Shown here piece after piece: positions 2,536-50,879 of a DNA stretch of 64,000 nucleotides. Source of the stretch: Entomortierella parvispora E1425 (Eukaryota; Fungi; Mortierellomycota); NCBI GenBank assembly GCA_020891255.1, contig BQFW01000013.1, positions 1,054,001-1,118,000 on the forward strand, given 5' to 3'. The notes below the pieces were generated by a model, which did no database searches, was not told the DNA's origin, and was given only the letters and a program-made list of their open reading frames with translations. Made by a program: the position numbers and the translations under genes. How positions within the stretch are numbered: the stretch's first letter is position 1; each line of letters begins with the position of its first letter.

Positions 2536-4705
2536 ATGAGTCAAGTCCCCGGCACCAAGACCTCGACAAAGACCTCCACCGTGAACGGTGTCACGACCGT
2601 TGTCACAACCATCGAGACCCCAGGTCAACCCACACGTATCACCACCACCACCACCACCACCACGACCAAGAAGCCTGTCGCTCCAGGTCAAGTCCAGCCC
2701 CAGCCCCAGCAGTACTTTTCTTCGCGCCCTGTCCCTGTTCAACAAGAACCAGAACAGCCGAAACGCAGGAGTTTCTTCTCTTCGCTCAAGAAGGTCTTGC
2801 CCGGCAACAACTCTGAAAAGCGAGCCTCCATCATCCAGACCCCTCCACCACCACAGCAGCAGCATCAGCAGCGACCTACCACACCCGTTCCTGCGCCGGT
2901 CCAACAACAGCAGCGACCCACACCCGTCCCTGCACCAGTCCAACAGCAGCAGCGACCTACACCCATCCCTGCCCCTGCCCCGGTCCAACAGCAGCAACGA
3001 CCTGCTCAGGTCCAGCCACAGGTCCAGGCACAGCGCCCGGCCCCTGTTCAGTCACAGGCCCCCGTCTTGCCCCAGATCATTCGCCAAGAGAATGGCAATG
3101 GTATCTTTGAGGACCTGTCTGAGAAGTTGCGCCAGACGACCTTGACCCGGCCAACACCTGCGGTCGAGCACCACACATCGACGTCAACGTCGACCACCAC
3201 GACCCAGAACGGTCATATTGTCCATCATGCCTCCACCACCTACTCTGGTGAAGGTATGCCCGACGATGCCATCTCCCTTCTCAAGTAGGTTACTGACTGA
3301 CCTCAGACTGACTTCATGGTTTGTTCCTGATTTCATATTCTAATCTCTATTTTTTCTTTTTTTCGCGTCTGTGCCATCATTTCCTTTTTCACCTTCACCC
3401 ACTTGTAGGCGATCCCAACCCCTGTTGGCGCCCACTTTCAGTGGCCAAAGATTGGATGTGGACTCTATTGATTTCTCGCGCGAGGATGAATTGGCCCGCT
3501 CTTGCCCCTCTTCCAAGATGGCGTCGATCCCTGCTCTGTCTGACTACTTGACCTCACCCTGCGCTGGGGACAAGGTCTCTCAGCTCCGGACCATCTTTAC
3601 CTGGATGGCCAACAACATTATATACGATGTGCCCGCCTTCATGTCGGGTCACTATGGTGACCAGTCCCCTGAAGGTGTTCTCCATAACCGAAAGGCCGTC
3701 TGCGAAGGTTACGCCAACCTGTTCATTGCCCTGGCCGAGCCCGCAGGACTTGATGTCAAGAAGGTCATTGGTGTCGCCCGAGGTGTTGACATCCAGGTCG
3801 GTGACGAGCGTCTCGGCAGTCCCCATGCCTGGAACGCTGTGACGATCGATGGCGAATACCTGTTGATTGACTCGACCTGGGGTGCTGGTGTCTGTGATCT
3901 GGCCACCCGCTCCTTCCGCAAGCTGTTCCGTCCCTTCTTCTTCTTGCTTCGACCCAACCGTCTCATCTACACTCACTGGCCCGATGATCCCCGCGAGCAG
4001 TTCTTGGACCCCCCAATTCAAGAAAAGGTCTTCAGGGACCTCCCCGCGATCAAGCCCGAGTCTTGGGGTCTTGGTATCAAGCTCGCAGGCAAACACCGCG
4101 GTCAGGTTATCCGAACCAAAGACGATTCGATCGAGCTCGAGGTCCGTCTGAAGAAGCGACCCTCTGACGGTCAAGCGGGCAAGATCGTGGCCCGTTTGAA
4201 CTGGAAGGGTCAATCTGTACCGACTTCCTGTCAATGGTTGAGAGATGACGCCAAATATGTCTGGATGTCTGTCAAGGGATTCTGTCCTTCGTCCGGTCAA
4301 GGCGAGCTGAATGTCTTTGGATGGCCCCCAGGTGGTGACCAGACCAAGAACGGACCTCAGTGCTTGAGCTTCCGTGTCATTAACGAAGGATCCGGTCGGG
4401 CAGCGAAACCCATGTTGCAGCAGTATGTGGTCAAGGGCTTTGCCTTCTCAGTCTTGGAGCCCATGGAGGCCTATGTCAAGAAGAATGTGCCACAGACGAT
4501 CAAGATCCGTGTCTTTGATGTGGAGAAGGGCGTGGTCCCTGCCTTGGCGTTGCAGTCGCCTGAGGGTGGCATGCCCGAGCGCCTGCCTCAGGTCCAACCG
4601 GGTCTCTTTGAGGTCCAGAAGGTGTTGAGTGCAGGCCAATGGAAGATTGTCAACATGAACTCGGAATATGCATTCAGCTTTGCAGCTGTTTTCGATGCTG
4701 TATAA
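2536..4705 (+). CDS. Transglutaminase-like (kyphoscoliosis peptidase/Cyk3-type) protein with Thr/Gln/Pro-rich N-terminus
   Basis: Two exons (2536-3284, 3409-4705) joined in frame by a GTAGGT...TAG intron. Catalytic-triad motifs AVCEGYANLF, HAWNAV and LIDSTWGAG are present. The N-terminus has QQQQRPTPVPAPV repeats. Confidence 0.85.
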
Positions 4706-47788: not shown

Positions 47789-47801
47789 AAAAATATCAAA
47801 A
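47789..47801 (-). terminator. Pol III terminator-like T-runs after the tRNA 3' end
   Basis: T4 and T5 runs on the minus strand directly downstream of the discriminator base. Confidence 0.5.
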
Positions 47802-47805
47802 GATA

Positions 47806-47866
47806 TGAAAGTGCCGGGACTCGAACCCGGTTCTCAGGCTTGGAAGGCCGGAATGATACCCATATA
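47806..47866 (-). tRNA. 3' part of a tRNA-Gly(TCC) gene split by a transposon
   Basis: Minus strand: (TA)TATGGGTATCATT CCGGC CTTCCAA GCCTG AGAA CCGGG TTCGAGT CCCGG CACTTTC A, giving the anticodon arm, T-arm with B-box, and acceptor 3' strand. Confidence 0.85.
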
Positions 47867-49672
47867 GAGACCATGCCAAAAACATCCATACCTCTGATTT
47901 GAATGTCCGGTTTCATATGGATCTCCACCCCTTAATAAAAGTTATGACTTTTCGCGCACTCAAGGGGAGAAAGGGACGCCACTCAGCTCTCTGGAGATGC
48001 AACTCCCATCTCTCTACCATGTCGGATCCTCGATTTAAACGGAATGCAGCACGACTGACTCGTAATGAATACTGCATTCTGGCGAACGTCCAAAGCTACT
48101 TGAATGGGACTGGGGCCTTCCACGAGCACCGTGGCAAAGTCACCGCCCGCAAGCGTCTTGCCCTCATAACTGGGATCGGTTCAGATACGGCGCGGAAAGC
48201 TATTCAGTTTTATAACGGCGTGGGGGAGGTTTCGGAGAAACGCATTGGTCGACCAAAACACATCATTGAGACTGACTTGGGCGCAGCCATTCGAGAATTT
48301 GTGTTGGCATGCAACAAAGATGGAGTGCCTGTGACAACGAATCTAGTTTTGAAGGAGCTGCGGGAAAAACACGGTATCGTTTTCGCGAAGCGAACCTTGG
48401 TCCGTCGATTAAAACGGCTAGGTCTTCATTACGGCAAAGGAAGCAGGAGGAATATCCTCCATGACTCCCAAGCGGTGATCGACTATCGTGATGTTTACAT
48501 CGAGCGTCGCCTCTCGAATCTGAACCCCAAGGGTCTTCCAATTGTTCCTGAGGTGTTCCTTGATGAGTCATATTGTCATCTAGACCATCACAGTCTTCGG
48601 ACATGGTTGCCTTCTGGAGGCTCTGTCAATGAGCGAGGACGAAAGCCAATGCTTGTCATTTTCGGTGCATTCGTGGTATTCCGAGTTGACAACAAGCTCA
48701 GGGCAGAGCTCGTCAAGAAAAAGCATCCTCATCTGGCCGGTCAAGGGTCAATTGCGTGGTCGAGAGGGTGGACGTGCCGCAGACAACGAGCTATGGAAGA
48801 CTGTTCCTGATTTTGTCCGAGAGGCGGGTATTGCCCCTGACTACCATGACTACCACGGTAACTTTGATGCGGATCTGTTTGAGCGATTGTTTGAGGCTCT
48901 GTGCACAACACTCCATGAAGACTATGGGCCTTGTCACATTCACATGGATGGCGCCAAGTACCATGTCCGCGAAGAGAATCCAGTACCGAAAGCAAGCTCC
49001 TGTGTGAGAGATATCCATTCGTGGTTCGAAAAGAATGGCATAGAGCTACCAACAAATGACCGGGGCAAGATCAAGTCTAGACTCGAGCTTCTTGAGCACA
49101 TCAAAGGTCTCAACATCCCCAAGACCTTTGCTTCATACCGAATTGCACACGAATACGGACACACCATTTGCAAGACACCTCCGTATCATTGCGAGCTACA
49201 GCCGATTGAAATGGTCTGGGGAATGGTCAAGAACCCAATTGCAGCCAATCCTAACTTGGACGAGACTGAGCTGTCACTGCGAAACCGCCTTTTGGGACTC
49301 TTCGCTGGCATTCAGGAGTCACAGCTTATTGCTGTTTGGAAAAAGACTGTCCAGGTTGGGAGGGACTATCGGATTCTCTACGAAAGACGACTCGAAAACA
49401 ATGAAAACTACAGTGAAAGTGACGATGATGACCGCGAATTTGATAGTGACACAGACAACAGTGAAATTTCTAGTGACGAGGAGGCATAGTATTTTCTATT
49501 TTTTTTCAGTACCATTGTTCTCAGTAGACATGACCCCAGTGAGTCCAGTCCATCATGGAACATCGTTTAGAGTCAATGAAGTTTTTAAAATCAGAAGAGA
49601 ATAGAAAAAAAAAAGGCAGAGGGGTGTGAGAATTTAGGTTTTGTGAGGTATGGATATTTGTGGCAAGATCTC
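47867..49672 (+). mobile_element. IS630-Tc1-mariner DNA transposon (DD86E, Sailor-like), 1806 bp, TA TSD
   Basis: 28-bp TIRs GAGACCATGCCAAAAACATCCATACCTC (47867-47894) and GAGGTATGGATATTTGTGGCAAGATCTC (49645-49672) match 24/28. TA at 47865-47866 and 49673-49674. A transposase lies inside. Confidence 0.9.
48019..49489 (+). pseudogene. DDE transposase with one +1 frameshift
   Basis: HTH region (LKELREKHGIVFAKRTLVRRLKRLGLHY) and catalytic motifs VFLDESY, HMDGAKYH and PPYHCELQPIEMVW, with 86 residues between D2 and E. The frame changes in the A-run at about 48718-48722 (ELVK/KSILIW). Confidence 0.85.
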
Positions 49673-49684
49673 TACTACACTTTC
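49673..49684 (-). tRNA. 5' part of the same tRNA-Gly(TCC) gene
   Basis: Minus strand GAAAGTG TA G TA. GAAAGTG pairs 7/7 with CACTTTC at 47807-47813. Confidence 0.8.
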
Positions 49685-50032
49685 TTGTTCTTTGTTGTTT
49701 CGGAGAATTTATTTTCCTCTATGAAACTGTCCTTCTTCTCAAACCCTTAATTACATACCCTTAAGTAAAGCATGCTCGGTACTTTACCCCTTAATTCAGG
49801 GCAAGGACCTGTAAAGAAAAATTCAGGGCAAGGCCGATCGCGTTTTTTTTTTTTTCAGGCACTTCTCCGAGCCTAGCAACAACAACAACAGCAACAACAA
49901 AGATTACCCCACACCGCCCAAGAACGGAACGAAAGTTTGTTTGAAGAGATCTTGATTATTATTCAAAGGTAGTTTAGAGAGGGGTATAAGTGTTTTTTAC
50001 ATACAGTGGATGTATAATAATGTTTTTTAAAG

Positions 50033-50632
50033 TTAAGGCATGGGGATGGAGAGATGGTCCTGCTGCCGGTACGCCGGGCATGGGGGTTGAGGCTGCACAG
50101 TTTCAGGTACGCCAGTTTCAACAGGGGCAACGGGACTTTGAGCTGATGCTGGAGAGGAGCAGAGGGTGGTTTGTTCGGTAGAAGAGTATTCTGGAGGAGG
50201 CAGCGACGAAACATGTTGGTCTCCCTCAGGATCCTGGGTTGTTCCATCCGCTTGATTTCCTTGGGTGTTCAAAACTGGGTAGAAGACGAATGTAGTGGGA
50301 CCGAAGGCGGTATTATGGTTGACCATATCAGTACCTCTCGAATATACAGGAAGCGATTCGGTCTCTGTCATCGTTCTGGTGGGTTGATGGGGTACAGGTG
50401 TTTGAGCCATGTTGGTTGAGGCATTATTGCGCTGTGCTGCCAGGGGCGGGGGGGTGATATACACCGTGTACCGGCTGCCCACTTGACTTGTTGGAAGGAC
50501 TCTTGCGTTTGATGGTGGAATAGTGCGGGATTGACGGGCGCAGAAGCATTTCAGCAATGCTAGAACGGTGCCCACGACAATAGCAATGATAACAACCTCC
50601 ATTGTGGGGCCGGACGAGGAGAAATACACCAT
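50033..50632 (-). CDS. Small single-pass membrane protein with PY-like motifs
   Basis: MVYFSSSGPTMEVVIIAIVVGTVLALLKCFC (TM segment plus Cys), then a Pro/Thr/Gln-rich tail with LPVY, PPEY and CPAY. Confidence 0.6.
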   Translation of the reverse strand: MVYFSSSGPTMEVVIIAIVVGTVLALLKCFCARQSRTIPPSNARVLPTSQVGSRYTVYITPPPLAAQRNNASTNMAQTPVPHQPTRTMTETESLPVYSRGTDMVNHNTAFGPTTFVFYPVLNTQGNQADGTTQDPEGDQHVSSLPPPEYSSTEQTTLCSSPASAQSPVAPVETGVPETVQPQPPCPAYRQQDHLSIPMP

Positions 50633-50879
50633 CAGGTTAAAGGCGGCGAAGAGTAAGGAAGAAAGTAGTAAGGAAGGTAAGTGCCGAAAGGGAAAAGGAA
50701 GAGAGAGAGAGGGCTGAGCACAGGTCAAAAAAAAAAAAAAAAAAAAAAAAAAAAACGTCCAGTGGGCTTTTAAACATTTCTCGTTTTCTCACCAGAAGAA
50801 ACAAACCCTGTCATTCTCGACAATTCCAACGGTGTCAAAGTCGAAGCATCCACGGAAATGCAGGTCATCGTCATTTGTC

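Follow-up and report, generated by a model that had tools for sequence, protein, structure and literature searches.

RESULTS

A tRNA-Gly(TCC) gene is split by a DNA transposon

The window (the whole stretch of 64,000 nucleotides that was analyzed) contains a tRNA-Gly(TCC) gene on the minus strand, the two parts of which lie on either side of a DNA transposon of 1806 bp (47867 to 49672, plus strand). Nucleotides 1 to 10 of the tRNA, comprising the 5' acceptor strand, U8, A9, and G10, are found at 49675 to 49684; nucleotides 11 to 71 are found at 47806 to 47866 and comprise the rest of the D-arm, the anticodon arm, the T-arm with its B box (GGTTCGAGTCC), the 3' acceptor strand, and the discriminator. 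Directly past the 3' end of the tRNA, two T-runs (T4 and T5; 47789 to 47801, minus strand) read as a Pol III terminator in the sequence. The transposon is flanked by two copies of TA, of which the left (47865 to 47866) corresponds to T11-A12 of the tRNA and the right (49673 to 49674) was assigned from intact paralogues and empty sites; the same comparison establishes that the target duplication is exactly TA (2 bp). The insertion therefore interrupts the A box and D-arm, and both this position and the T-run terminators behind the gene are visible in the sequence, as the preliminary description of this DNA had reported; its coordinates and sequence were correct as described when the window was reread.

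Neither ARAGORN nor Rfam called a tRNA in the interrupted window. When positions 47867 to 49672 and one TA were excised in silico, ARAGORN at its default settings called, on the minus strand, a tRNA-Gly(tcc) of 71 nt; its acceptor stem is 7/7, and its D-stem is weak. The 61-nt 3' part, used as a query against its own genome, has five identical places; the four others, on contigs C15, C14, C2, and C1, are uninterrupted genes, all of which match the rejoined sequence over the entire 71 nt. Each of these intact genes scored 51 bits against Rfam RF00005, for which the gathering score is 29 bits, and the match between the rejoined 71 nt and four such genes rules out a chance resemblance. The claim that a true tRNA-Gly(TCC) gene has been split precisely by an element of the Tc1/mariner superfamily that duplicated TA is thus borne out both by the call on the rejoined site and by its identity with four paralogues. 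A whole-genome search with RF00005 scored only 63 candidates, a figure that is not a count of the tRNA genes in the genome.

It had also been suggested that the target might be a variant isodecoder. This suggestion did not survive: the gene belongs to a family of five copies, and a 74-nt contig carrying the tRNA is 100% identical in three other strains in which the flanks differ by 10 to 20%, as would be expected if the gene is functional and conserved and not a variant in decay. The hallmarks of a Pol III gene are all present, namely, the B box, the terminator T-runs, the five genomic copies, and the conservation across strains.

The upstream regions of the five genes are not alike. In three of the four intact genes, one to three CACGTG palindromes lie 57 to 103 bp upstream, and the fourth has only degenerate versions; the 200 bp upstream of the disrupted copy (49685 to 49884) hold no CACGTG. 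The disrupted copy may have been weakly promoted.

The element and its genomic family

The transposon has 28-bp terminal inverted repeats (TIRs) at 47867 to 47894 (left, plus strand) and 49645 to 49672 (right, minus strand), which match each other at 24 of 28 positions. They enclose a transposase gene (48019 to 49489, plus strand), the conserved part of which begins at Met35 of a longest frame starting at 47917. The transposase scored 32.8 bits against Pfam DDE_3 (PF13358; cutoff, 28.6 bits), and its predicted catalytic residues, D216 (48562 to 48564), D344 (48947 to 48949), and E431 (49208 to 49210), are invariant among 14 to 15 aligned homologues, with 86 residues between the second D and the E (DD86E). 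This combination of TIRs, a TA duplication, and a DDE_3 transposase is that of the IS630-Tc1-mariner superfamily. Homologues of the transposase occur in Mortierellaceae, Rhizophagus, and oomycetes; no solved structure matched the transposase by sequence.

A genome-wide search recovered 13 full-length copies in the genome of the soil fungus Entomortierella parvispora, including the copy in the window. Their alignment contains zero substitutions, and the copies differ only by two single-base indels in homopolymers: an extra A at 48718 in the window copy and in three others (L002 to L004) and an extra T in a T-run of one further copy (L013). A degenerate 26-nt TIR pattern had 26 matches in the genome, which are the two ends of each of the 13 copies; searched genome-wide with up to three mismatches, it revealed no miniature inverted-repeat (MITE) copies and no solo ends. 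Judged from these sequences, the family appears to be very young and recently active.

In the window copy, the extra A in the A-run at 48714 to 48718 shifts the reading frame, so that the transposase is divided between two overlapping open reading frames (ORFs). The homopolymer indels break the ORF in five copies, and the other eight have an intact ORF of 523 amino acids. The E1425 assembly was built from Nanopore reads and polished with Nanopolish and Pilon, with 192 nuclear tRNA genes predicted (PMC8759367). In short reads from the source sample, the collapsed contig of the element is present only in the unbroken form, without the extra A; since the assembly is Nanopore based, the frameshift in the window copy may be an assembly error, as may the homopolymer indels of the other four copies.

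Two older, diverged relatives of the transposase were noted elsewhere in the genome. One, at C9:1136413-1137873 (50% identity), has an in-frame TAG and is 100% identical to the GenBank hypothetical protein EMPS_07014; the other is at C6:2083229-2084896 (29 to 42% identity).

Empty sites in other strains

Two strains that carry the same species label, X5 and X6, have single-copy contigs in which an intact D-arm is followed directly by the homologous right flank, itself approximately 80 to 90% identical to that of the window; in X5, moreover, the homologous left flank continues into the 3' end of the tRNA at equal depth. This search, the in silico equivalent of the PCR for empty alleles that had been proposed at the outset, was therefore positive between strains. 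Because the site is empty in two other strains, the insertion is derived, and the ancestral state is the intact gene.

An assembly artefact, or a chance tRNA-like match with halves that belong to the element, could be entertained on the grounds that the assembly is based on Nanopore reads and that the homopolymer differences between copies resemble assembly errors. Against this, a single-copy short-read contig from the source sample covers the right junction (49647 to 50716) and contains the final 26 nt of the element followed by the unique sequence of the right flank; the rejoined sequence, moreover, is equal to that of four intact genes and has been conserved in other strains as well. In the short-read contigs from the source sample, the depth of the element is approximately 14 times that of the flank. 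We consider that there is practically no chance of either form of artefact. That the tRNA halves are part of the element was ruled out separately, as the other 12 copies do not have them.

Other sequencing runs under this species label (X3 to X11) contain no more than 2% of the 31-mers of a 2.9-kb stretch at this locus, and their flanks are only 80 to 90% identical to those of the window; the label may therefore cover deeply diverged lineages. The 13-copy family was not found at near identity in the other runs with this label. A horizontal arrival of the family cannot be claimed, since the runs that do not have it are also 10 to 20% diverged in the flanks and one of them holds relatives that are approximately 84% identical.

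Genomic positions of the 13 copies

The genome-wide TIR search and the rejoining of flanks that the preliminary description had called for were carried out for all 13 copies, and only the window copy rejoins into a tRNA. TA is present on both sides of every copy (13/13), and the insertion sites have an A/T-rich, roughly palindromic consensus, with the logo A-T-A-[TA]-T-A-T (TA central in ATA-TA-TAT).

A second copy is located on the same contig, 20 kb further downstream; it follows a tRNA-Leu(AAG) gene, 29 bp beyond the 3' end and directly after the terminator of that gene. The geometries of the two copies differ: in the window, the TIR on the transposase side abuts the tRNA body, and at tRNA-Leu, it is the other TIR that faces the tRNA trailer. 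For the remaining 11 copies, there was no tRNA within 1.5 kb of the emptied site (ARAGORN with and without introns; Rfam) and no match to any other Rfam family; a B box was likewise absent up to 1 kb from the point of insertion. The count of the B-box pattern in the genome was barely above that of the control. The four other identical tRNA-Gly(TCC) genes do not contain the element.

Several of the copies lie in or next to ORFs. One is nested in a piggyBac-like transposase ORF (around C7:632953; locus L009, positions 702 to 1499 and 3308 to 3696; Pfam DDE_Tnp_1_7, E = 1e-29), one (L013) is at the 3' end of a PIF1-helicase-like ORF that possibly belongs to a Helitron, and one is immediately 5' of a cyclin ORF.

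Three pairs of copies are 17 to 54 kb apart, where approximately 0.24 pairs would be expected by chance (Poisson P = 0.002). These pairs, at C13:1101867 and 1121792 (L001 and L005), C7:1516730 and 1571171 (L003 and L002), and C1:1918226 and 1935075 (L012 and L004), are a signature of local hopping.

The relatives of the element were surveyed in the same way. Its diverged relatives in the genome (on C9, C6, C1, and C2) have no tRNA within 1.5 kb. No tRNA was found beside 65 metagenomic relatives or on three contigs encoding the closest proteins, a survey of low power in which most flanks are short, and none of the 14 relatives with recognizable TA-flanked TIR pairs rejoins into a tRNA.

The tRNA-Leu(AAG) gene has a second neighbor. 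An insert of approximately 300 bp with a poly(A) tail and an 18-bp target duplication lies approximately 100 bp upstream of it, at C13:1123813-1124115 (L005, positions 3522 to 3824), some 5.8 kb past the end of the window. It belongs to a family of at least 45 copies that are 81 to 100% identical; in 8 of the 12 loci fetched, there is a tRNA within 1.5 kb, and the insert is always on its 5' side, at times in nested arrays. The family looks like a SINE or retroposon that targets the region upstream of tRNA genes.

DISCUSSION

In this study, we have examined whether a transposon that splits a tRNA gene used a TA by chance or belongs to a family that seeks out multicopy tRNA genes as a safe haven, two readings that the preliminary description had placed side by side. 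The census favors chance: a single copy of the 13 lies within a tRNA gene, another lies 29 bp behind one, and 11 are not within 1.5 kb of one. We consider it probable that the family has no dedicated tRNA-targeting mechanism and that the insertion in tRNA-Gly represents ordinary use of a TA by a young, Sailor-type family.

The strongest form of targeting would be a site-specific safe-haven transposon that, like Dada, recognizes the sequence of a tRNA gene. The presence of one copy within a multicopy tRNA gene is what such an element would show; however, the four identical tRNA-Gly(TCC) genes are unoccupied, 12 of the 13 copies lie outside any tRNA gene, and the flanks have nothing in common except TA and an A/T-rich context. 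The likelihood that the family is of this kind is vanishingly small. More generally, the census of 13 copies, the unoccupied sister tRNA-Gly genes, and the differing geometries of the two tRNA-associated copies lead us to reject, for this family, any site-specific or tethered mode of insertion like that of Dada or Ty3/TRE elements.

A weaker alternative is a genuine, if loose, preference of the family for Pol III-transcribed genes or for their nucleosome-free surroundings, which could arise through chromatin accessibility, through spatial clustering of tRNA genes together with local hopping, or through contact with Pol III factors. Two of the 13 copies are in or no more than 30 bp from tRNA genes, a zone that makes up approximately 0.07% of the genome as computed from the 192 nuclear tRNA genes (PMC8759367); these two copies are 20 kb apart, no tRNA genes other than the two that they hit were found in that stretch, and the flanks of tRNA genes in this genome also attract the SINE-like retroposon. 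Under a uniform model, the probability of two or more of 13 copies at such sites is approximately 4e-5. There are only two events, however, and one of them is the reason that the locus was flagged. The fair test is therefore conditional on that copy, and the probability that at least one of the other 12 lies at such a site is approximately 0.8% with a 30-bp margin and 1.7% with a 100-bp margin (corrected P, ~0.01). The excess of tRNA-associated copies rests on one event and is suggestive.

Other observations weigh against a loose preference: 11 copies have no nearby Pol III feature, the distance and orientation relative to the tRNA are inconsistent, and relatives elsewhere show no tRNA association, albeit in a low-power test. 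Purifying selection in a compact haploid genome could, moreover, enrich harmless sites without any targeting. An excess of this kind could alternatively stem from a preference for nucleosome-free DNA, from selection against insertions in genes, or from local hopping. Taken together, we regard a loose preference as unlikely, at roughly one chance in five, and ordinary use of a TA as the better account of the insertion.

It is slightly less likely still that the Sailor-type transposon has a moderate bias toward Pol III genes in common with unrelated families, such as the SINE-like retroposon upstream of tRNA genes. If this were true, several families would share tRNA genes as a landing zone because of chromatin or nuclear position and not because of element-specific tethering, and the bias would be the first of its kind described for an element of the Tc1/mariner group. 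If a real bias lay behind the two tRNA-associated copies, this fungus, with its compact genome, could serve as a system for the study of several classes of transposon that converge on Pol III genes.

Returning to ordinary TA use, we propose the following course of events. A recently active cut-and-paste element of the IS630-Tc1-mariner superfamily (DD86E, with 28-bp TIRs and a 523-amino-acid transposase) would have integrated at an ordinary TA, which by chance was T11-A12 in one member of a set of five identical tRNA-Gly(UCC) genes, within an AT-rich stretch of the D-arm (GTAGTATATGGG). The family seems to choose TA sites with A/T-rich, roughly palindromic surroundings and has a tendency toward local hopping, and the tRNA-Gly insertion would be one outcome of this behavior. 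Integration would have duplicated the TA, cut the A box, and placed 1.8 kb between the first 10 nt of the gene and the remainder. A functional Pol III tRNA would not be expected from the split copy, since 10 nt and half of the A box now lie 1.8 kb from the B box and the minus strand of the element holds long T-runs; this gene copy is thus probably silenced, a loss that four intact copies should render tolerable. It had been envisaged that perfect excision would restore the gene. Excision of Tc1/mariner elements typically leaves a footprint, and such a restoration would therefore be only formal.

The locus provides a clean example of how a very young DNA transposon can inactivate a redundant tRNA gene by inserting into it, with the ancestral empty site kept in other strains. 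It should serve as a marker for recent activity of transposons in E. parvispora and as a natural reporter of excision and its footprints.

Among known elements, Tc1 and Sleeping Beauty resemble the present transposon in their TA duplication, A/T-rich palindromic target context, and local hopping, as well as in the motifs DE(S/T), DxAxxH, and NPIExxW around the catalytic triad; however, their catalytic spacing is DD34E, whereas that of the present element is DD86E. The spacing points instead to Sailor, a superfamily (DD82E; range, DD78-111E) that was first recognized in a fungus of the Mortierellaceae (Lobosporangium) and also occurs in oomycetes (PMC8533490). The 86-residue spacing falls within the published range of 78 to 111; a DDE_3-type core, short TIRs, and a length of approximately 1.8 kb are further points of likeness, and Mortierellaceae and oomycetes are hosts both of Sailor and of homologues of the present transposase. 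Sailor elements mostly duplicate TATA and have TIRs that usually start with GT or CC, features that are usual and not universal (PMC8533490), whereas the present element duplicates exactly TA, as the empty site shows, and has TIRs that begin with GAGA. By catalytic spacing and host range, the element fits Sailor and is a candidate member of that superfamily.

The association of a transposon with a tRNA gene also has precedents. The preliminary description had named only retroelements as inserting beside tRNA genes, a picture that is incomplete in that Dada DNA transposons are already known at such genes (PMC3706591). Dada elements live inside multicopy tRNA and other small-RNA genes and are sequence specific (PMC3706591, PMC8869645). 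Like Dada, the present element is a DNA transposon within a multicopy tRNA gene, where redundancy should render the insertion harmless. Unlike the present family, with 1 of 13 copies inside a tRNA gene, Dada copies all occupy an identical position in one and the same small-RNA gene; Dada also makes 6- to 7-bp duplications, and its transposase is unrelated.

The retroelements Ty3, Ty1, and Dictyostelium TRE5 and DGLT-A land beside tRNA genes through contacts with Pol III factors, and almost all of their copies do so (PMC5911963, PMC5633606). As with the present insertion, they are associated with Pol III genes, where landing does no harm even in a compact genome, but they are retroelements and lie beside tRNA genes, not inside them. 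In the present genome, it is the SINE-like retroposon that fits Ty3/TRE-type behavior, and not the Sailor-type element. Most copies of a tRNA-targeting element should lie at a fixed position in, or a fixed distance from, a tRNA gene, and the 13 copies of the Sailor-type family that were checked do not. Since most of its 12 sister copies occupy unrelated TA sites, the insertion in tRNA-Gly, real and recent as it is, represents ordinary behavior of a young Sailor-type family.
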